NCBI GenBank assembly: GCA_024626585.2 | Contig: JANKJI020000004.1 | Coordinates: 63,393,472-63,417,751, forward strand | DNA from: Ginkgo biloba | Taxonomy: Eukaryota > Plantae > Ginkgophyta | DNA: 24,280 nt | Direction: 5' to 3' | In this document: in pieces, positions 2,053 to 20,943 of the stretch | How the letters are laid out: each line of letters starts with the position of its first letter | Numbering within the stretch: the stretch's first letter is position 1 | Notes under the pieces: model-generated | What the model was told of the DNA's origin: nothing | Seen by the model: only the letters and a program-made list of their open reading frames with translations | The model's database searches: none | Made by a program: the position numbers and the translations under genes

Positions 2053-2834
2053 AAGTGGGTTGAGGCTATTCCAGTTAATAAAGCCAATAGTGAAGTAGCT
2101 GTGCAATGTTCATTTTCAACCAAACTATAACTAGATTTGGCATCCCATTAGCTATTATTTCAGGTAGAGTCCATTTCTTTAATGAGTTGATGGAAGAACT
2201 ATTTTGAAAACTTGGAATAAAACACTCCAAGACTTCCTATTACCATCCTAAAGCTAATGGTTTAGTGAAATCATTCAACAAAACATTGAAGATAATTCTT
2301 TAATGAATAATTTATGAAAGCTATTAAGATTGGCATCCTAAGATTTATTCAACATTATGGTCTTAGAGAATGACCACCATGGTTACCATAGGTTTTATAC
2401 ATTTTTCACTCGTGTATGGATGAGAAGTTATTCTTCCCATTGAAGTGTAGATTCATTCTTTAAGAATAGAAGTTCACAATCAGTTATATTTGATAGACGA
2501 TTATACCATTCAACTTTCCAAATTAAAATAACTTCATGAGATATGTCTTGGGGACTTTAATATTATANNNNNNNNNNNNNNNNNNNNNNNNNNNNNNNNN
2601 NNNNNNNNNNNNNNNNNNNNNNNNNNNNNNNNNNNNNNNNNNNNNNNNNNNNNNNNNNATTCTTTTCCAAATCCAAAATGAAGATAGGCCTCGACAAGTT
2701 AAAATCTTGATGGTTAGGACAGTTTTATTATTTTGAAAGTTTTATATAAGGAAGCTTATCAACTCTCACATATGGATGATAATGTATTTCCAAATCCAAT
2801 AAATGGGTCCTCTCTAAATCACTTTTATTCTTAA
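2053..2834 (+). mobile_element. Decayed Ty3/gypsy (Tat/Athila-group) integrase: rve core and GPY/F C-terminus
   Basis: Manual translation across stops, frameshifts and a gap gives KWVEAIP..TRFGIPLAIISGR..LGIKHSKTSYYHPKANGLVKSFNKTL..DWHPKIYSTLWS*R..LVYG*EVILPIE and KLKS*WLGQF..EAYQL..FPNPINGSSLNHFYS*. The catalytic D and E are mutated. Confidence 0.93.
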
Positions 2835-2891
2835 TATTAAAAGTAAGAAACCTCCCTCTTTGAATCCTCTTATTAATGGACATTAATATTT

Positions 2892-2907
2892 AAAAGAGGG
2901 GGAACTA
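2892..2907 (+). mobile_element. Polypurine tract (AAAAGAGGGGGAA) and probable 3' LTR start (TA at 2906, presumably from TG)
   Basis: Purine tract about 60 nt after the integrase stop. The LTR end could not be located because of gaps. Confidence 0.6.
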
Positions 2908-5900
2908 TCCTTAGATTAACTAAGTTTATCTATTCATTAAAAAGAACGTTTGTGTATTTTACATGATACATCTATCTAAAATGTACAATTCCAACATCAA
3001 ATATCAATAATATATTTATGTACACAACCATGGAATATGAAGTGATTAACAATATGTTTTTGCGTGTGTGTATATGAGTGTAACATTTTATAATATCATA
3101 TCTTTGATATAAGTACACATTAAGTAGTATTGATAGTTTAAAACACACACACACACTATCACACACACATATAAATAAAATATATGAGGCATCATCCAAC
3201 TCTAAAAACTCTTCCTACACTAAGAAGGAGCCTCATAACTCTCTAGAATGTAATAGGAGTTCCTTTTTATAAATATTCATATGGTAGTAGNNNNNNNNNN
3301 NNNNNNNNNNNNNNNNNNNNNNNNNNNNNNNNNNNNNNNNNNNNNNNNNNNNNNNNNNNNNNNNNNNNNNNNNNNNNNNNNNNNNNNNNNNNNNNNNNNN
3401 NNNNNNNNNNNNNNNNNNNNNNNNNNNNNNNNNNNNNNNNNNNNNNNNNNNNNNNNNNNNNNNNNNNNNNNNNNNNNNNNNNNNNNNNNNNNNNNNNNNN
3501 NNNNNNNNNNNNNNNNNNNNNNNNNNNNNNNNNNNNNNNNNNNNNNNNNNNNNNNNNNNNNNNNNNNNNNNNNNNNNNNNNNNNNNNNNNNNNNNNNNNN
3601 NNNNNNNNNNNNNNNNNNNNNNNNNNNNNNNNNNNNNNNNNNNNNNNNNNNNNNNNNNNNNNNNNNNNNNNNNNNNNNNNNNNNNNNNNNNNNNNNNNNN
3701 NNNNNNNNNNNNNNNNNNNNNNNNNNNNNNNNNNNNNNNNNNNNNNNNNNNNNNNNNNNNNNNNNNNNNNNNNNNNNNNNNNNNNNNNNNNNNNNNNNNN
3801 NNNNNNNNNNNNNNNNNNNNNNNNNNNNNNNNNNNNNNNNNNNNNNNNNNNNNNNNNNNNNNNNNNNNNNNNNNNNNNNNNNNNNNNNNNNNNNNNNNNN
3901 NNNNNNNNNNNNNNNNNNNNNNNNNNNNNNNNNNNNNNNNNNNNNNNNNNNNNNNNNNNNNNNNNTTCATATATAATGGACACATATGAGAATGTGTATC
4001 TCCTCCTATGAGTATTATACAAATTTATTGATCCTATAAAGGACAATAATAACATGATGTTAGAGTGATACAATGTGCCATCCATTCATCCATCATAGAT
4101 CCTGGGGTACCCTATAATTTATGGAGAATATATTAATCCTTTGAGTAACCATCTAAGCCACTATATTGTATGTCTCATCTTGGATCTCTAAAATATCAAT
4201 GGTATCGTTATCCCTCATAATATANNNNNNNNNNTTACACAATCTTTGAGATACAATAACTCAATCCTGATCTCTGAATGGATCTCCCTAAAATGGCATA
4301 TATGTCTTACTCTATGATAACCCCATTATGTAGTGTATATTCTCTCAATTTATTTTTAATACATGAAATAAACAATTGAACACTCACATATGAAAATCCT
4401 ATCAAATCATAGCGAGACTAATAATCTAGTTATAAGAATATGATTGGGGTTCTTTATAGAATATAAGAATCCTACATCTCCTAAGAATATTAATCATCTT
4501 AACATTATGGCCNNNNNNNNNNNNNNNNNNNNNNNNNNNNNNNNNNNNNNNNNNNNNNNTTACTCTAGGATCAGTTTTTAACATATTGACTATTTTATTA
4601 ATATCATGCTTTTTCCTCCTCTATGTTGTATTTTTCCCTTGAATTTCCTATGATTCTATTCTATAAGGAAAATATATGGTTCCTTTAGAAGAGATAGAAC
4701 TTCCTGAGGAAATATATAGTATTAAGAGAAAGGCTATAGTGTAGTTTATTTTCCTAAAATTTGAAATTTTAAAAATTGACAAAAATTTATAAATAACAAG
4801 TATAATTAATAATTGATATAGTTTTTGGGACCTACCTAATTACTATAAATGGACTCATTCTAACTTCACTAAGTAATATACACCTAAAATCTCTATATTA
4901 TCTCTATATCACCATGTTGACTTGTACAAATGATTACAAAAAAATTTATATATATATATATATATAATATGCCAATTTGGTACTATAATGTGACTTTTGA
5001 ACTTCATAAATTTCACACTGTGTTAATTTTTAGCAAAATTATAGCTTTTTGAACCATTATTTTATATTTATTGATTCCATCCATATTTGATGATGTTATT
5101 AGTATTAATTTAGATTTCTCTCAACTAAAACATCATTTTGGTCATCATTTACCTTAGAATATATAAGAACCTAAGGTATACTTAAATTGAACATCTTTAT
5201 AGTCCATAATAACCTAAAGNNNNNNNNNNNNNNNNNNNNNNNNNNNNNNNNNNNNNNNNNNNNNNNNNNNNNNNNNNNNNNNNNNNNNNNNNNNNNNNNN
5301 NNNNNNNNNNNNNNNNNNNCTTACACACACATAGTGTTAGTCCATCATCTCCATAATAGTAGTTTTATATCAAGGATGATATATATATGAATACTTAATA
5401 GGGATGGTAGAACCACATTGATATTATTTCATATGAAAAATTTCCTCCTCTCACTCTATACTTGAAAAAAAATATTAAGAATAAGAAAACATTTGTGATA
5501 CTTAGGAAATAATATTCATTAAAGAAAATAATTCAAATTCTTTATCTATTAATTTTGAGTGTATTTGAACTAAATAAATCCTCTTAGAAAAATGTCAAAA
5601 ATGAATGAGAATCATGTCGGTGAGTTGAGAAGATATAAAATCATAAGGTAAGAAATACATTAACAATTATTAGAATATAATTACATCAATCACTCACTGG
5701 TAGAAATTAAATACATGAAATTGGAAATAGAATGGATTTCCATTAATAGATTAGGATTTAATTATACAAACAATAATAAAGGAAAAAATAAAGGGAATAT
5801 AGGAGAATAAAAGATGAAATTAGCTTCCAAAATATTCCTTATTATTTTATACTATATCTCTTTAACCAATCACATTCTTCCACTTTGTGTAGAAAATTCA

Positions 5901-12155: not shown

Positions 12156-13130
12156 CCCATTAAAAACTTATATTATTCATGAGAAGATGAAGAAACCCTT
12201 TAAATTTGAGTATATAACCTTGAATAAATATTCTCCTATGTTAACTCTTCCTTGAAATCTTTGAATTTCCTTAACTGCATGAGGTGGTAATAATTTCATG
12301 ATTTATTTTATTTTGTTAATATATATAGAAATATCATTCTTGGATATAATGTATTGCAAGAAACAACTAGAAACAACATAAAATATGTTATTCGAAGGAT
12401 TAAGCCTAATCTTGAACTTTCAACATCTATAAAAAATCTACATTAAATTCATTATGTGGCCCTCACATTTTCTATATTTTGTCAATATGTAATCTAGGAA
12501 AGTAATTATAACCTTTGACATTAGCTCATGAAAGGCATAGTTCATTTCTCTTTGAAAGGTAGCACTGACATTCCTAAGGCTAAAACATATAACTTTATAG
12601 AAAAATATTACCTAAGGTATAGTAAAATCCATCTTAGGTCTATCAACTTTAAAAATAAGGATTTTTTTTATATCCTAAAAATTCATCTATGAGTGAAAGA
12701 ACTTCATAAATAGTTGTTCTATCAATGAGATCATCCATAAATGGAGTATGATAGTTATCCTTATGGCATTCCCTCTTTGATTTTTATATTCCATACATAT
12801 GTGTATTGAACCATTCTGATTTTATACTGGGATAATATTGGATACCCATTATATATATTTGATGGGATAAATGAAATAAATATCTAATAATTTCCAAAGT
12901 TTTTATTTAATAACTAATTAGAAGTTATCATTTACTAGTCTCTAATGCTATCATACTAGATTAATATTAGGACATATTAATATATTATCAGTGACTACAT
13001 TAGTATCCATTCCAATCATCTCAAAATATGACCTAATAAATACATCTCTATAATCTTAAAATATTTTTCTAAGTTAATCTTACTCCTTCAATGTGTATTT
13101 AGTACCTTAGGTAATGTACTCTAGTTTTCT
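12156..13130 (-). pseudogene. Reverse transcriptase
   Basis: KDNYHTPFMDDLIDRT..LSLIDEFLGY..SLRNVSATFQREMNYAFH..FLDYIL (decayed YxDD)..KIRLNP..KEIQRFQGRVN. Confidence 0.93.
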
Positions 13131-13134
13131 GGAG

Positions 13135-13169
<35 letters not shown>

Positions 13170-13863
13170 AGGGATTATATTCATCAAATTTTACTCTTAA
13201 AATACATTAATAACATTTGGTGTGAGAGATAAGAAATCTNNNNNNNNNNNNNNNNNNNNNNNNNNNNNNNNNNNNNNNNNNNNNNNNNNNNNNNNNNNNN
13301 NNNNNNNNNNNNNNNNNNNNNNNNNNNNNNNNNNNNNNNTTCATAAACAGTTGTTCTATCAATGATATCATCCATAAATGGAGTAGGATAGTTATCCTTA
13401 TGGCATTCCCTCTTTAATTTTGATAGTCCATATATATGTTTATTGAACCATTCTTATTTTAGACTGGGATAAGATAGCCATTATATATATTTGATGGGAT
13501 AAATGAAATAAATATATAATAATTTCTAAAGTAAAAATAATAACTACTTAGAAGTTATCTTTTACTAGTCTTTAATGGCATCATACTAGATTAATATTAG
13601 GACATATAAATATATTATTAGTGACCACATTAGTATTCATTCCAAGCATCTCAAAATATGACCCAATAAAGACATCTCTATAATCTTTGAAGATTTTTCT
13701 AAGTTAATCTTCCTCCTTCAATGTGTATTTAGTAACTCAGGTAATATACTCTAGTTTTCTAGAGTAAGAGATATATATTTNNNNNNNNNNNNNNNNNNNN
13801 NNNNNNNNNNNNNNNNNNNNNNNNNNNNNNNNNNNNNCATTTGGTGTGAGAGAAAATAAATCT
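12703..13863. repeat. Direct duplication of ~540 bp (12703-13239 vs 13340-13863) of the RT N-terminal part, separated by a 100-N gap
   Basis: The copies align end to end, about 90% identical by eye; both start TTCATAAA.AGTTGTTCTATCAATG and end CATTTGGTGTGAGAGA..AAATCT. Confidence 0.95.
13137..13166. repeat. (AT)15 microsatellite
   Basis: Read directly. Confidence 0.95.
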
Positions 13864-14609: not shown

Positions 14610-14970
14610 TGGCATATTTTTATGTGTGAATTTTTTTCACGTTAATATCTTTCTCTCTCAATTTAATATAGTGTGTGTGTGAGTAATAATCCCACATTGG
14701 TACCAACCTCGAGAATGGAGTGGTTTATGAATCCCATCACCCACCAAACCCTTTGCCAATGGGGTAACAAGATTAGAGGTGCAATCCATCGATCACACAT
14801 TTGTGGGACTATTCACCCCTATTAACATTAGGTCATAATGTTGTGTGTTGTGTAGTGGCCCTCTTGACTCGGTTGGCTCATTGTGATATAAAAATGTATA
14901 TTGCAAGTCTATTCGTGGCATATTAAAATGTGTGAATTTAATTCACATTAATCTCTCTCTCTCTCTCTCT
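14610..14970. repeat. Unclassified repeat with ~50-bp imperfect direct repeats (14610-14659, 14916-14965), ending in (CT)n
   Basis: TGGCATATT...ATGTGTGAATTT..TTCAC.TTAAT.TCT.TCTCTCTC occurs twice, about 306 bp apart. Confidence 0.65.
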
Positions 14971-15086
14971 ACATTATCCCAGTCCATTTAACTTATATCA
15001 TGAGAATTCCTTCCACATTCCCCTCTTTCACTCCTTTCTCTTGTTTCTTCCTCATACCTTACCCATTTTGGCCAGTGTTCAACTCC

Positions 15087-15779
15087 ATGACCATGAGAAT
15101 TTACTGAAAAATGGTGAGTATGGTGCCTTGAATCTCCAAATGTAGTTGTTCCAAACTTTAACTTACCTGTATATGAGTTCTTTTCCTCTTTTCTTTGCCA
15201 TCCAACAACTATAGTTGGGTCTACTCTTAATACAAGTTGTATATTTCCACTTGATATTTTTGAAAGTTAGCGAGTCTGGGTATTTTCCAAATTGACAGAG
15301 TTGTCTTTTAAAGATATTGATATCCTAACAATTCCTTTTGAATGAAATGATAAGTGCCCAGAAGTTTAAAATCCAAGGAGAGAGCATAATGTTGCACTAG
15401 GAACCACTTCTGTGGAAGAAACTAATAATGTTTAGTGTAACAGCATGGCTGTGGCAACATCACCTCTAGAATCCCTCATTATTACCAAGTTTTCACCAAA
15501 TATGATAGTGTCCTTCTTGGATACATATGACTATACTTTACTAAACATAGCCATCCCTTCCATAATGCCACCACCATTAAACAACTTTTAAAAAGATAAA
15601 TTTGTAAGAAATAACTGAGAATGCTGCACATAGGCTATAAAATTTTCCTCTTTCTCCCACCGTTGTTGCATTCTCTCAAAATCCTTAATTTATTCTATTG
15701 TATTCTGTTTTGGACCCAATTCCAAACTAGACGTTAGGCCTTCCATACTATAGATGTCATAAATTTTCCTCTTGCGCTC
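15087..15779 (-). pseudogene. ATJ13: Processed DnaJ13/OWL1 (DNAJC11-like) fragment, N-proximal segment (end of J-domain to SHG), placed second
   Basis: 231 codons in one frame with 6 stops: ERKRKIYDIYSMEGLTSSLELGPK..GGGIMEGMAMFSKV*S..SLKDNSVNLENTQTR*LS..SGNIQLVL..VGWQRKEEK..GKLKFGTTTFG..HTHHFSVNSHG. This matches recalled plant dnaJ13 ([43 protein letters not shown]). No intron. Confidence 0.92.
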
Positions 15780-16110
15780 AAGGATATGATCCAAAGTCAT
15801 TTTTTACTTCTCTAGATTTTTTTCTTTTCCCCTTTTTATGTCAGTAAGGTTTAATTACACAAACCTTTAGAAAATCATAGAGTGATGATGGAATAATTAA
15901 TTTCCCAATAGCAATAAATGGGTTCAAGGCTCTTGAGAGTAATACAAGAATACTAAATTTCTGATCGCCACGATGGAGTTCAAATCTCAAAAAAAAATTA
16001 TGAATTCCTAGAGTGTGGAGAATTCACATAGTAGTGTAGTTTGATATTATTTTTCCACCTTTGAATTCAAATTCAAGGGAAATAATCCCAATTCTACCTC
16101 CAATTTGACC
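15780..16110 (-). pseudogene. ATJ13: Processed DnaJ13/OWL1 fragment, C-proximal segment, placed first
   Basis: GQIGGRIGIISLEFEFKGGKIISNYTTM*ILHTLGIHNFFLRFELHRGDQKFSILVLLSRALNP..IIPSSLY..IKPY..LEK*KMTLDHIL matches GRIAGRVG..LEIEVGGGRKIS..KFELHRGGQK..LLSRHLNP..IPTSLY..VKPY. There is one +1 slip in an A-run near 15835. Confidence 0.9.
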
Positions 16111-16304
16111 AGCTAACGTCAAGTTACAATTAAGACCTTTGTCGAGAAACATTGAATAAGCTTTCACAAATGTAGTAAAATATGTAATGGAATGCTCCAC
16201 AACAACCATTGACTCAATGAATCCATCTCCACACTCGAAGCACACCATTTTCTTGTAAGTGATGAAGAGATGTTAATAAGTAAAGAGGCACATCAGGAAA
16301 GTCT

Positions 16305-16316
16305 GCTTTGATACTA
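16305..16316 (-). promoter_or_regulatory. Primer-binding site, tRNA-iMet (unit 3)
   Basis: TAGTATCAAAGC vs consensus TGGTATCAGAGC (two G->A changes), abutting the LTR. Confidence 0.85.
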
Positions 16317-16547
16317 TATTGAAATAGGTACTCAAATTGCATTACATGCAAATTTGTACCAAGAACATGTGTAATTCAAAACTGTTCATCATTACAATAT
16401 TAGTGTCATCTATTTATACACTATGGGGATTAATTGCTTTATAAATACTAACATTTATAATTACTTCATGTGATCACATGATGGCTAATGTTATTTTTCT
16501 AACATGTGATGACTAATATGTGACCATTAACAACATTATTTCTAACA
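16317..16547 (-). repeat. Short LTR type A (231 bp), internal and shared between units 2 and 3
   Basis: TGTTAGAAAT...ATTTCAATA termini, an internal TATAAATA, a PPT on one side and a PBS on the other; homologous to 20146-20328. Confidence 0.9.
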
Positions 16548-16558
16548 CCCTCCCTTAA
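16548..16558 (-). promoter_or_regulatory. Polypurine tract (TTAAGGGAGGG), copia-style
   Basis: Immediately precedes the TG of LTR A. Confidence 0.88.
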
Positions 16559-16649
16559 TGTTGGTTGGGGGTCACATGAAAAATGAGGTGTTGGTATTGA
16601 CTCTACAAGACTTTATTTCTTCCCATTATGATCTCATTATCTTTCATAT

Positions 16650-16856
16650 TTGAAATTTCCAACTTGTGGTCCTTCCAATCTGGTTCTTCTTTTTGGTTTA
16701 GATTTGAAGCCTCCAACTCATAGTCCCTCCAATATGGTTTTATTTTCTCTTTCAGATTTGAAGCCTCCAACTCGTTGTCCCTTCAATTTGCTTCTACTTT
16801 CTCTTCTTTTCTCAATAAAATTCTATTTTTGGAAGTCTCCAACCCATGGTCTCTTC
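16650..16856. repeat. 54-bp tandem repeat x3 plus a degenerate fourth copy, just upstream of the PPT
   Basis: Units start TTGAA..TCCAACT at 16650, 16704 and 16758, with a related motif near 16830. This explains the 18-aa periodicity of ORF 16650-16943. Confidence 0.88.
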
Positions 16857-17227
16857 TTTAGCAATTATCCTCTCCTCAGAGCATCCAAATCATGGTCCCT
16901 ACAAGGTTTTTCCCTTCCTAAAACATTGCATAGTTTTATCTAAAATAATCTTTTATCCATCAATAAATTGAATTTAATTATAATCAATTCCTCATTTTCC
17001 TCTCCATATCCATCACTGTCTTCCTTAATAAGTTTTTTCTATTACTCAATGTTGTGATCTCTCATTATCCAATTTACTATCCTCCTTAGTTGAATAACAT
17101 TCTCATAGAAAATATATTGAATCTAAACTACATTATATACATGTATAACTTTTCATACTAATATGGGACTAAATCAAACATCTATAGAATAATTTTAAAT
17201 ATGAAATGTAATTATAATTTCTCCCTA

Positions 17228-17601
17228 TGACAATAGTATTTGATGAAAGAGTATCAAGACCTTGATGATATTTCCATTTTTGGACATACCCTCCAATCAT
17301 TATACTCCATGATATAATATTTCACTCGGGTATTTTTTCAAACAGATGGTATGGAACCCATATTTCACATTCTTGACTATATAAAAGAATATGATTTGTG
17401 TCTAGTCTTGATTATGTAACCATGGATCCTCTTGCTGTGTTACAAATTTGTTGAATGGATAAATGCTAGGAGTACACTCATTATAGTTACATAGTTGGAA
17501 ATCATGCCAGCAAGTTACATTCAATGAAAGAGAATCAATACCTCAACCTAAAAATCATTCTAGTCTATGATATTTCTTAAAGATATTTTGTCAAGTAATT
17601 A
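17228..17601 (-). pseudogene. PLS-class pentatricopeptide repeat (PPR) gene fragment
   Basis: LLDKISLRNIID*N; EVLILFH*M*LAGMISNYVTIMSVL..L*HSKRIHGYIIK; HLFEK; NIISWSIMIGGYVQ/NGNIIKVLILFHQ. Confidence 0.88.
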
Positions 17602-17604
17602 TAG

Positions 17605-18700
17605 TTGATAGTATAAATATGATTGGCCTTTCCACTTGATAGAAAACTCGATTTCATTCCAATCTATCTCATCATCTGATGAGGTACTTAATACAGGTGG
17701 CCCAGGTTGTTTATCATCTGCAAGTGCATTTTGATCAATTCCCTTAGGTTGATGCCATATTACTCTCTCAATTATATCAACATCATATTCATTAAACTCT
17801 TCTATGGAAATTTTAACTTGTTTATTGGCCTGTTCTTCCTCTTCATCTTCACTCTATTCACTTTTAACATACAAAATTTTATGAATCGATCTACTTGACT
17901 TTTGTAACTCTATTGAATGTACATCCTTATTCCTCAACATGGGATGTTAACCCTATCCCTTCCTATGAAGTGATAAGACCTTCCTTGATGAATGATTAAA
18001 ATATTTATCACTATCTTCATTTGTATCTTACGTAGAATATTTCTCATTCTCTAATATTATCCTTCCCCTTTTGGGGTGCATAGATCTAGTTAAACCTTTT
18101 TCTTCTCTAGCTGACTATGAAGCTCTTATAACTCTGTGGTTACCTCGATAGACAAGTCCTATATACTCTTAATCACCTTCATCCCCATCCTCCTCCTCCA
18201 TATATTCTTCACTAGCATACTGTTCATCCTTGCATGTTTGACGATGACTTCAATTGGCACTATAAAAAATAGGATTGAAATCAACATCATCCAAGCCATC
18301 CTCATATTCATCATCCTATTCATCCTCTTTATGGTAATCATCATCAACAACTTCTAATTTTATAGATTTTGACCTCTTTGGAACATTTTTTTTTTCACCA
18401 ACAACCCTTATTGAAATCCTAGAATTTAAGCCTCTCACCCTATTAGCCTCTCTACCCAATAATGATTCACTCCTGTCTTATCCACCCTACTCATACTAAT
18501 CATCAAATAACATATCTTCCATAGGGAACTCTATTTGGTCTCTCTAGTTTTCTCCAGCATCCTTATGCTCATAGTAGTCCTCTACTTCTAACTAGTTTTC
18601 TCCATCGTGAGTTATATTATCTCCACAACCTTCTTCACCTTGGTAATTAGAATCTATTTTTTTTAAATCTTTCCCAAATTTAGAACTTTTCTCTTATTTA
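17605..18700 (-). pseudogene. CHR5: Processed CHR5 (CHD1-type remodeller) fragment: acidic N-terminus to first chromodomain; may extend to ~18870
   Basis: FPMEDMLFDD*YE*GG*DRSESL (cf. VPADEMLSDEYYEQDGEEQSDSL), EDGLDDVDFNP, SSRSIHKILYVKSE*SED, DIIERVIWHQPKG, DWNEIEFSIKWKGQSYLYYQ (cf. SIEKVLWHQPKG..DWNEMEFLIKWKGQSHLHCQ). No intron is evident over ~1.1 kb. Confidence 0.92.
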
Positions 18701-19058
18701 GCATAATTTTAGTTAAATGGAGAGTGTGTGCCAACATAGATTCCAACACCTTTTTCACCACCTATCTTTTAGCACCCACATTAGCATTCATGTGCATTCA
18801 CCATTTTGCATGTGAATGAAGATTATTATGATAAACTCTCTGCCTTGAAATTGGTCAAATTTCACCTCTTCCTTAGAATTACAACAATAAAAATATCCTC
18901 CAAAGAAATTATTTGATAGAGTTACTCCTTATAAACTAACAATTATATTTTTTATAAGAAGTAATAAAAGTTATATTTTTACATAGCGAGTGATGAATAG
19001 ACACCAAGCAGATACTGAGTAGAAAAGAGACACAATAGGAGGCATAACAAGAAAGCTT

Positions 19059-19070
19059 GCTCTAATACCG
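19059..19070 (-). promoter_or_regulatory. Primer-binding site, tRNA-iMet (unit 2)
   Basis: CGGTATTAGAGC vs TGGTATCAGAGC. Confidence 0.8.
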
Positions 19071-19347
19071 TATAAGAAATTAAGAGATATCATTTATCTC
19101 ATATCTTTTGCATGAGTTATAGCTCTGAAATAATATTCACAACATGAAGAAGACAAAAATATAACACACAAAATAATATTGATATTCTAATATCTTTTAC
19201 AATGTGAATAGCCTCTATATATACTCTATAGAGACTAACTAACTTGCAAGTAACTCAACTACTAATATGTATAATATCTTATTTGATCATGTGACAACTA
19301 ATACGACATCCAATATATGACTTAATATGATGACTAGTGTGTGAACA
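19071..19347 (-). repeat. LTR type B (distinct from type A, truncated by the gap)
   Basis: Abuts the PBS, contains a TATA-like GAGTATATATAGAGGC, and shows only patchy similarity to LTR A (CATGTGA..ACTAATA, TGATGACTA.TGTGTGA). Confidence 0.65.
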
Positions 19348-19447
19348 NNNNNNNNNNNNNNNNNNNNNNNNNNNNNNNNNNNNNNNNNNNNNNNNNNNNN
19401 NNNNNNNNNNNNNNNNNNNNNNNNNNNNNNNNNNNNNNNNNNNNNNN

Positions 19448-19884
19448 AGAAGGTTATCCCTGAGCACGGTATTCCCTGGTATTAATTATGATGCTCATAT
19501 TATCATACAAAAGCTCTAGGGAGGGTGATCTTGCACCCTCTTCATAAGATCACCCTCCTCATCTATCGTCTAATGACAAACCAGACTGCAACAAATGTCC
19601 ATGAGCTTGACATTCATAACTCGAACCTCTAGGTCAAGATCCATAGCCCTAGTTAACTCTTTCACAAAACCTGGAAGTTGAATTCCTAGAAGCCGTTTTG
19701 GATCATCAGCCCACTGGGTTTTTCTTTTCCTTTTCCTGATAACAGAGCCAACACTCTCTTGGGTTTCACCTTCCCCATCTGTTTGAAAACCCTAGCATGA
19801 GATAAGTTTCTTGTCGCTGCTCGCTTCAGTTGATTTTGTACCTTGATTATTCGCTTGGCTTGACCCCTCTACTTGGTCTTCCAT
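19448..19884 (-). pseudogene. SF1: Splicing factor 1 (SF1/BBP) N-terminal fragment
   Basis: [79 protein letters not shown] matches plant SF1 ([57 protein letters not shown]). Confidence 0.93.
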
Positions 19885-20134
19885 GGTTCTTGATTATCCG
19901 ACGCATTGCTACGCAACCACTAGACTTACCACATAGTAATCGTCGGTTGAGGCAATGACAAGAGGTCCTATTTCGATTGCATGGGTATTTCATATGTGCC
20001 CTCTAACACCAATTTTGATTCCTGGCAGAGAAGCCACACACAAGGGAAACTACGTCTAGAATTTTTCTAGTCTTCCCACACTCAAGGAGCATCATTTCCT
20101 TGTTAGTGATGAAAAGACGCAAAGGCATTATTTT

Positions 20135-20145
20135 ATCTCATACCA
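20135..20145 (-). promoter_or_regulatory. Degenerate PBS, tRNA-iMet (unit 1)
   Basis: TGGTATGAGAT directly after LTR A'. Confidence 0.7.
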
Positions 20146-20328
20146 TATTGACATAGGTACTCAGCTTGCATTACATGCGAATCGTACCAATAACATGTTC
20201 AATCTTAGAATTGTTCATTATTAAATATGAGTGTCTTCCATTTATACACTATGGACATTAACTACTAACATATATAATAACTCCATGTAATGATTAATAT
20301 GTGACCACTAACTACATTATTTCGAATA
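20146..20328 (-). repeat. Short LTR type A' (183 bp), 5'-most LTR of the array
   Basis: Aligns with 16317-16547: ATAGGTACTCA..TTGCATTACATGC..GTACCAA.AACATGT..ATTTATACACTATGG..TAATATGTGACCA.TAAC.ACATTATTTC. Confidence 0.88.
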
Positions 20329-20943
20329 GCATTTCCATATAAAAGAAACACTCTATCCGTATGTTTATTATTAGAGTATAAATACTAAATAAACACCATG
20401 AAAAATTTATGCAGTAGTGATCTAATGTATAATTGTTGTTCATTTTAGGGCTTAAAATACATTGGAAACCATAAAGTTAAGCACCTCCAATGTGGAGAAT
20501 CAAAGAATTAGAACTTTGAATTGGGATGTTTTAGTTCCCATAAAATATGGGATAAATCATTTACACCTATCATATGATAATATTGACATATTTACTACAT
20601 GCAATCATCCATAAAGTGTGTTAAATAAGACTACATCAACACAGGTCTATGTGCAATATAAGATATGTATAGTACTATGCATAACATATATATTCAATAG
20701 ATTGTACATCATATGCTACAAATAATCTAGAGACAGTGCTACACATGTAAAATATGTTGAATTACCATCATATATATTGATTAACCGAATACAATTTTAA
20801 ATGTCTTCGAGTGTTATTTTCCATTTATAGTGTATGAGTTTAAGATAACTATATATAACCTAATGTTATGGAATTAATACTTCATGGATATTTTTTTTCT
20901 TGAAAGCAAGGGCGGGAGTGTTTATATACATATTTTTTTAAGG

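Follow-up and report, generated by a model that had tools for sequence, protein, structure and literature searches.

A probable stepwise composite of related, decayed LTR units carrying processed host-mRNA fragments in Ginkgo biloba

Introduction

How did pieces of several host mRNAs come to lie, all in one orientation, among three short long terminal repeats (LTRs) in the Ginkgo biloba genome, and do they speak for a new vector system or for ordinary gene capture? The locus occupies positions 15000-20328 of a window of 24,280 nt, which is the whole stretch of DNA analyzed (assembly GCA_024626585.2, contig JANKJI020000004.1, forward strand 63,393,472-63,417,751); all coordinates below are window positions. 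Nineteen runs of N mark the window as a gap-rich draft. The original prediction saw here a tandem array of non-autonomous LTR vectors on the minus strand, loaded with four different host genes and acting as a retrogene and exon-shuffling system. The analysis below retains most of the architecture and much of the cargo, and assigns them a more ordinary origin.

Three related LTR modules

The minus strand carries three related modules, each an LTR with a tRNA-Met-type primer-binding site (PBS), arranged head to tail in the order A', B, A. The succession of LTR, PBS, leader, and cargo occurs three times, while that of 3' region, polypurine tract (PPT), and LTR is intact once. Including cargo, the units are 0.9-2.8 kb long. 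Unit A' carries a fragment of SF1 (splicing factor 1), unit B fragments assigned to CHR5 and a PPR gene, and unit A a DnaJ13-like sequence; several pieces of 31-84 nt are also present. Alignments among A, A', and B, the PBS-like sites, the PPT, and the repeats largely bear out the predicted anatomy.

LTR A' (20149-20331, minus strand; 183 nt, TG...CA) is the 5'-most LTR of the cluster, and a TATAAA box lies within it at 20246-20241. Its alignment with LTR A (16320-16547, minus strand; 228 nt, TG...CA) reaches 84% identity over 292 ungapped columns, with a score of z=23 against dinucleotide shuffles, and this homology runs on through the PBS-like site and ~75 nt of leader, to 20076 and 16229, respectively. 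LTR B (19075-19466, minus strand; ~292 nt after gap closure, ends TG...CT) is a divergent relative of A, alignable with it once the two sides of the gap are joined, and matching it in local alignment at 77% with z=6.7, higher than all control stretches. Pairwise, the three LTRs differ by 16-23%. No further LTR A-like copy occurs elsewhere in the window. At ~14985-14973, a 13-nt resemblance to an LTR start could be a truncated third LTR; by a hand estimate, ~0.4 such 9-mer matches are expected by chance in the window, and the resemblance is not relied on.

The canonical copia tRNA-iMet PBS is TGGTATCAGAGC. Three to four nucleotides past each LTR lies a 12-base PBS-like site that agrees with it, by hand count, at ~9-10 of 12 positions (~9 of 12 in unit A'). 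In unit A', the PBS-like site (20145-20134) and its leader occupy 20076-20145, and the leader is common to unit A; in unit B, they occupy 18990-19070 (PBS 19070-19059) and align with the PBS of unit A and the beginning of its leader; in unit A, they occupy 16214-16316 (PBS 16316-16305), all on the minus strand. Because the LTRs are short and the PBS is of the tRNA-iMet type, the elements are probably copia-derived. Within the unit A leader, a 42-nt segment (16255-16214) corresponds to an expressed host mRNA, represented by X20 record 17 and by X24 reads whose ends are loose on either side. This segment, with a weak Pfam match to Zn_ribbon_19 (E=0.028), may have been captured at an earlier time.

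Immediately before LTR A, the PPT reads AAGGGAGGG (16548-16556, minus strand). It is preceded by a family-specific 3' internal region of raised depth (16557-17171, minus strand), which includes 3.1 copies of a 54-bp repeat at 16640-16805 as delimited by TRF and a repeat finder; many contigs of other copies skip 54-bp units. Both the tract and the repeats are therefore where they were predicted to be, and LTR A sits between a PPT and a PBS, with all three LTRs and internal regions in a single orientation.

The junction upstream of LTR B is of a different kind. The assembly places a gap at 19348-19447, and the original prediction marked a gap between SF1 and LTR B. A single 2835-nt contig (X1 record 4) aligns from positions 1-233 on 19680-19448 and from 234-2835 on 19347-16746, with nothing between. 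Because it joins 19448 directly to 19347, the gap has zero true length; the predicted order holds, without any intervening sequence, and the assembly is to be corrected at this point. It follows that SF1 runs directly up to the start of LTR B without a PPT, the TG at 19466-19465 abutting or overlapping the SF1 end.

The units are decayed as elements as well. Thirty minus-strand fragments gave no gag/pol match in Pfam, and of the N-free open reading frames (ORFs) in the window only one, within the 54-bp repeats, reaches 90 aa; the absence of gag/pol noted in the original prediction is thus upheld. No chimeric ORF exists at the locus, inverted repeats were not found in the window, and an Rfam search returned only a chance, sub-threshold archaeal snoRNA. 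Matching 5-mers as target-site duplications (TSDs) are absent at every pair of LTR ends, and an outer 3' LTR was not found in the window; because of this, no unit can be demonstrated to be an intact integrated element.

Captured host-mRNA fragments

All identified cargo lies on the strand of the LTRs, in sense, as had been claimed. The fragments derive from 5' or interior portions of mRNAs, each ends inside coding sequence, and poly(A) tails of the sort that would indicate LINE-mediated insertion were looked for and are present on none of them. Every piece contains stop codons, so that the cargo is nowhere the intact coding sequence of the original prediction.

The longest fragment (17620-18660, minus strand) corresponds to the N-terminal cDNA of a CHR5/CHD1-type remodeler and ends in the middle of chromodomain 1. 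Its 1041 nt keep a single reading frame, broken by 13 in-frame stops and free of introns. An exhaustive HMMER search gave 39 matches, the best at 1e-17, and the matching protein P0020 has the CHD1 domain architecture; the chromodomain fragment alone had no match in Pfam or PDB, and no encoding contig is on record for P0020 or P0002. One tblastn HSP spans residues 101-441 of P0006. At the ortholog locus (L001), introns follow residues 213, 232, and 380, and this single HSP crosses all three positions, so that the predicted freedom from introns holds for CHR5, the piece examined. From a very short stretch, CHR5 differs from its probable parent contig at 25 of 295 bases, or ~8.5%.

The SF1 fragment (19466-19937, minus strand) is likewise an N-terminal cDNA fragment, with protein-level homology at 19731-19466. 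Stop codons interrupt it, its frame shifts once, and 13 nt are duplicated in inverted orientation. It matches P0040, which bears the SF1-HH domain (PF16275), with E=1.3e-12; two tblastn HSPs, a Pfam SF1-HH match (E=0.004), and SF1 as the sole PDB match agree with this assignment. Reads taken for the SF1 parent mRNA cover bins 19356-19937, and differ from the fragment at two listed positions in an estimated span of ~80 bases, a very short stretch, giving ~2-3%. Judged by sequence, the identity of both CHR5 and SF1 as cargo is proven. One candidate reading, in which A and A' would be the paired LTRs of a single young insertion bearing SF1, was rejected, the LTRs being 16% apart and SF1 only ~2-3% from its parent.

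The other two of the four predicted genes stand less firmly. The interval 17172-17480 (minus strand, extent judged by eye) contains a frameshift and is weakly suggested to be a PPR-gene fragment by Pfam matches to PPR (E=0.02) and PPR_2 (E=0.04) on 17321-17172. In unit A, frame statistics delimit two pieces on the minus strand, each in a single frame: piece 1 at 15844-16122 with one stop and piece 2 at 15087-15803 with six, compared with 8-15 in the other frames. Both are clearly coding-derived. We tentatively take them to be DnaJ13, with piece 1 presumably from a later part of the protein and piece 2 from the end of the J-domain onward. On this placement, piece 2 is upstream in the protein and downstream in the DNA, and the order is permuted. 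The only PDB match of piece 2 is the J-domain end of DNAJB2, at a non-significant E=0.74; word-index protein, Atlas, and PDB searches, and Pfam at E up to 10, were otherwise blank for DnaJ13. Next to piece 2, an 84-nt stretch (15011-15094) is from another, well-expressed host mRNA, represented by X20 record 16 (a 1019-nt contig at depth 236) and ~23 X24 reads, the ends being loose on either side.

Copy number was approximated by summed contig depth, a rough proxy and not a true copy number, with a single-copy baseline of ~75. By this measure, the LTRs stand at ~15-50 times the single-copy level: ~2770 for LTR A', 1257 for LTR B, and 2240-3717 for LTR A, with 290-1580 for the 3' internal region. 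Every cargo piece is at single-copy summed depth (likeness of at least 90%), and for this reason the cargo-bearing chimeras appear not to have been amplified after capture. Reads of poly(A) RNA agree with the region at 90-99% and in part only, and are interpreted as mRNAs of the parent genes. Contigs identical to the A'-SF1 unit occur in what is probably an RNA run, and this unit is at most still transcribed at a low level. The present cargo, then, is pseudogenic and single-copy, and the retrogene and exon-shuffling role once proposed for it does not survive.

Assembly of the array

Fragments that are processed, sense, and free of poly(A) favor capture by reverse transcriptase over LINEs or DNA transposons. 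The reading that we consider fairly probable is that the locus is a decayed composite, assembled stepwise from at least three related non-autonomous LTR units whose internal regions are fragments of processed host mRNAs. Element RNA would be copied inside virus-like particles supplied in trans, and reverse transcriptase, we infer, would switch onto co-packaged mRNAs and then back. Such switching would leave fragments in sense orientation, devoid of introns and of poly(A), between the element's leader and its 3' end. The head-to-tail order would then have arisen in several steps, with one unit inserting into or beside another, and unequal or illegitimate recombination may subsequently have left the shared or abutting LTRs. 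Given LTRs 16-23% apart, together with SF1 at ~2-3% and CHR5 at ~8.5% from their presumed parents over very short stretches, several events are indicated rather than one simultaneous system.

That same divergence bears on the alternative that survives best, a concatemer made in a single event. Here, serial strong-stop transfers and template switches within one virus-like particle would have joined several element RNAs and mRNAs, the DnaJ13 RNA perhaps being circular, and the product would have inserted once. Such an origin would account for the single orientation of every piece, the many small mosaic pieces (31, 42, and 84 nt), the permuted DnaJ order (on the placement assumed above), and the exact coincidence of the SF1 end with the first bases of LTR B; an LTR bearing both a PPT and a PBS, like LTR A, is predicted by the Sabot-Schulman model (PMC1950507). 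However, the cargo ages appear unequal and the three LTRs are far apart, no TSD pair bounds the array, and LTR B has no preceding PPT. The single-event concatemer is thus unlikely.

Part of the array might instead be an artefact, a short-read assembler having fused two loci through the high-copy LTR A/PPT/54-bp stretch, such that the shared LTR does not exist. The gap-rich draft invites this suspicion, with its 19 N runs, and so does the pattern of contigs. X1 and X2 contigs span 15230-16524; exact contigs end there and resume at 16746. The high-copy sequence between (16525-16745) has a depth of 20-50 times baseline and only a mismatched contig among those listed, none of which bridges it exactly, so that the join is the assembly's own. 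Yet no N run occurs at this stretch, and a DnaJ13-bearing contig covers LTR A except for ~23 nt, in two studies. Moreover, A'-SF1, SF1-B-CHR5-PPR, and LTR A-DnaJ are each contiguous inside single contigs, and the first two of these place two differently loaded units side by side regardless of how LTR A was joined. We regard such a fusion as very unlikely.

An equally improbable account is filler DNA, in which end joining would have filled a chromosome break with free cDNA pieces from elements and mRNAs, the locus never having consisted of mobile elements. It would fit the absent TSDs, the missing PPT before LTR B, and the short pieces in mosaic; but end joining predicts random orientation, whereas all pieces identified run in the sense of the LTRs, and it must also contend with the thrice-repeated LTR-PBS-leader-cargo order and the one intact 3' region-PPT-LTR succession. 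Scarcely credible, and already contradicted, is the notion that LINE processed pseudogenes, or DNA-level captures by a Helitron or Pack-MULE, merely lie between solo LTRs: LINE retroposition is rejected by 5' or internal mRNA fragments without poly(A), and Helitron or Pack-MULE capture by the lack of introns in CHR5 and of inverted repeats in the window.

Relation to known elements

The stepwise composite has close relatives in the literature. Spliced-mRNA capture by non-autonomous LTR elements is known from pepper, potato, and rice (PMC5664825), and maize Bs1 carries fragments of three host genes (reviewed in PMC13317346). Like those retroduplication elements (PMC5664825) and Bs1, the Ginkgo locus has intron-less mRNA fragments set among LTR, PBS, and PPT, lacks gag/pol, and has several genes captured by a single element. 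Unlike them, it presents no intact LTR pair with TSDs and no chimeric ORF, and its cargo is decayed and single-copy.

TRIMs offer a second comparison. TRIMs that captured exons only are published, such as soybean GmaRetroS15 with fragments of three genes, and so are TRIMs in tandem arrays of L3I2 and larger (PMC4717578). Exon-only capture and three LTRs and internal regions in one orientation are common to the Ginkgo locus. TRIMs have very short LTRs and a total length below ~1.5 kb; the LTRs here (183-292 nt) loosely fit, and the units run to 0.9-2.8 kb with cargo. The published tandem arrays repeat one internal region, and those TRIMs known to bear cargo are simple elements that have two LTRs and TSDs and mostly exist in at least two copies (PMC4717578). 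Here the cargo differs from unit to unit, and the LTRs are 16-23% apart.

Complex LTR elements that share an LTR, through recombination or abnormal template switching, were described by Sabot and Schulman (2007; PMC1950507), and the internal LTR between PPT and PBS is a feature held in common. The Triticeae examples fuse autonomous or known families (PMC1950507), whereas the units here are cargo-bearing and non-autonomous, and the SF1-LTR B junction lacks a PPT. LTR-mediated retroposition is also treated by Tan et al. (2016; PMC5131818), with the general idea of retrocopying through LTR elements in common, for animals and not plants. Both exon-only capture and LTR-sharing arrays are therefore already published, and the locus is clearly a case of ordinary gene capture by LTR retrotransposons and not evidence of a new vector system.

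Significance

The locus offers one well-resolved local case of the dispersal of host-gene pieces by LTR elements. A broader proposal, which we consider quite unlikely, is that the LTR A/B family is a 'Pack-LTR' family, most of whose ~15-50 copies, a figure from the depth proxy, bear different 5' portions of host mRNAs. Pick-up would occur by forced copy-choice at mRNA ends, and later switches would overwrite earlier cargo, the host-like 42 nt that the leaders of A and A' share then being a relic of this process. Single particles would also give rise to arrays of several units, a DnaJ13 copy derived from a circle among them. If the whole family were indeed to bear diverse cargo, plants would possess an RNA-level counterpart to Pack-MULEs, and this would have consequences for the cross-talk of siRNAs with SF1, CHR5, and other such genes.

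Architecture of the LTR units

All features of the LTR cluster discussed here lie on the minus strand. LTR A (16547–16320) and LTR A′ (20331–20149) each start with TG and end with CA, and align at 84% identity over 292 ungapped columns interrupted by three larger indels. Beyond the LTR, their homology takes in a 3-nt spacer, then a PBS-like site of 12 nt and ~75 nt of leader, stopping at 16229 and 20076, respectively, and the alignment score reaches z = 23 against dinucleotide shuffles. LTR B is far more divergent and was not recovered by blastn. Local alignment with LTR A nonetheless yields 77% identity spanning the LTR, PBS and leader start, with a score (z = 6.7) higher than that of all control stretches from the window. 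We take the PBS-like sites of the units to resemble the canonical copia tRNA-iMet site. A polypurine tract, read from the sequence, sits immediately 5′ of LTR A on the minus strand and is itself preceded by 3.1 copies of a 54-bp repeat, bearing out the predicted order of repeats, polypurine tract and LTR A. In all, the series of LTR, PBS and leader followed by a sense host fragment without introns is seen three times, and that of 3′ region, polypurine tract and LTR once.

The 100 N between 19448 and 19347 represent zero bases, because a 2835-nt contig of sequencing run X1 joins both sides directly: its positions 1–233 fall on 19680–19448 and 234–2835 on 19347–16746, with nothing in between. 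An identical 296-nt contig in runs X2 and X20 extends 63 nt beyond 19448. Once the gap is removed, the alignment of LTR A with B runs straight over the junction, and no polypurine tract precedes LTR B. The TG that starts LTR B (19466–19465) coincides with the exact end of protein-level SF1 homology by tblastn.

The surrounding plant draft sequence is ~70% AT and contains 19 N runs. Throughout the window, no N-free open reading frame of at least 90 aa was found except one within a repeat, and none of 30 minus-strand fragments matched gag, reverse transcriptase or integrase, in agreement with the predicted lack of gag/pol. A direct duplication of ~630 bp (91–95% identity) occupies 12703–13778, interrupted by an N run. 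Head-to-tail copies of a 306-bp unit occupy 14610–14965, each beginning on the minus strand with (GA)n; this is the most repeated sequence of the window (summed depth ~12000 vs. a baseline of 75), and it truncates the third LTR unit. Just ahead of the (GA)n run, 13 nt at 14973–14985 (minus strand) resemble the start of the LTR family and might be what is left of a third LTR, although ~0.4 chance matches of this kind are expected in the window by hand estimate.

Host-derived cargo

The SF1 cargo of the A′ unit is well founded. It matches P0040, a 94-aa protein with the SF1 helix-hairpin domain (SF1-HH, PF16275), at 1.3e-12. In tblastn it falls into two HSPs with one frameshift between them, and Pfam (E = 0.004) and the sole PDB match agree. 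Within the fragment, a perfect 13-nt inverted duplication (19520–19558, minus strand; arms 19558–19546 and 19532–19520) breaks the reading frame where P0040 is continuous, and may have arisen through a snap-back error while the RNA was reverse transcribed.

Searched exhaustively with HMMER, the 84-aa CHR5 fragment of the B unit matched 39 proteins (best 1e-17), including P0020 (1741 aa), which has the full CHD1 architecture of double chromodomain, SNF2, Helicase_C, CHD1 HTH and CHD1-like_C. Residues 101–441 of P0006, the product of an ortholog locus in another plant, align with 18660–17620 as a single tblastn HSP that keeps to one frame and contains 13 in-frame stops. In the gene for P0006, introns follow residues 213, 232 and 380, and one of these introns measures 3.8 kb. 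At each of the three positions the window copy runs on unbroken; it is therefore a processed copy, in line with its predicted freedom from introns.

The remaining assignments fared unevenly. PPR cargo has a Pfam match (E = 0.02) as its sole support. Both DnaJ13-like pieces keep to one frame and clearly derive from coding sequence; the name DnaJ13 was not confirmed by protein, Atlas, PDB or Pfam searches, the only PDB match being to a J-domain end (E = 0.74). The pieces (15087–16122, minus strand) are presumably colinear with Arabidopsis ATJ13 in permuted order, the later protein part first; on the same assumption, piece 2 ends at about the residue where piece 1 starts, like a circle opened once. 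Three small pieces, brought out by the 90–99% alike reads of the poly(A) RNA run X24, match well-expressed host mRNAs, with reads bearing loose ends on either side of each: 84 nt at 15011–15094, 31 nt at 18795–18825 and 42 nt at 16214–16255, the last in the leader common to A and A′ and with a weak zinc-ribbon match.

All cargo fragments come from the 5′ part or the interior of mRNAs and, as predicted, lie in sense orientation to the LTRs. None ends in poly(A); such tails, together with target-site duplications, had been named as a sign against capture.

Depth and transcription

Against an exact-contig depth of ~75 in X1, summed depth, which is not a copy number, reaches 2240–3717 over LTR A; the values are 2770 for A′, 1257 for B, 1580 for the 54-bp repeats and 290–585 for 16834–17221, but just 75–130 for all cargo. 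This contrast shows that the LTR and 3′ region belong to a repeated family and that the cargo is unique.

In X24, no reads at least 99% alike to the window were found; its reads are 90–99% alike, align only in part, and are read as parent-gene mRNAs. In each of six small, presumed RNA runs belonging to five studies, ~11% of the window's sampled words are present. In X20, the one of the six that was placed and whose label names another organism, these words are accounted for by contigs matching the A′-leader-SF1 unit, identical to 19448–19680 and, bar one letter, to 19654–20181. The unique stretches beside this unit have no depth in X20. On this evidence, low-level transcription of the unit is possible.

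Origin of the cluster

Template switching of reverse transcriptase onto a co-packaged mRNA would generate the pattern of LTR, PBS, leader and sense host fragment, and separate cargo-bearing units would then come together stepwise by nesting and recombination. It is possible that the cluster is partly an assembly chimera: no exact contig among those listed covers 16525–16745, where it is the assembly that joins two units through a common LTR. Against this, A′-leader-SF1 (19654–20253), SF1-B-CHR5-PPR up to the 54-bp repeats (16746–19680) and LTR A-PBS-leader-DnaJ (15230–16524, in two studies) each lie within single contigs. A single concatemer formed in one event is also possible, but the LTRs of the three units are 16–23% apart, A is nearer to A′ than to B, and cargo ages look unequal; stepwise assembly is favoured on these grounds. 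As to divergence from the presumed parents, two listed positions set all SF1 reads apart from the window over an estimated ~80 aligned bases, and 25 of 295 bases differ in an X2 contig that matches CHR5. Break-repair filler is a further possible source.

Non-autonomous LTR elements are reported to have captured the spliced mRNAs of thousands of plant genes (PMC5664825). A single other paper describes both tandem arrays of TRIMs and TRIMs that hold exon-only pieces from as many as three genes (PMC4717578), LTR-sharing elements are “not uncommon” (PMC1950507), and Bs1 holds parts of three genes (PMC13317346). The only new point of the Ginkgo biloba cluster is that neighbouring units hold different cargo.
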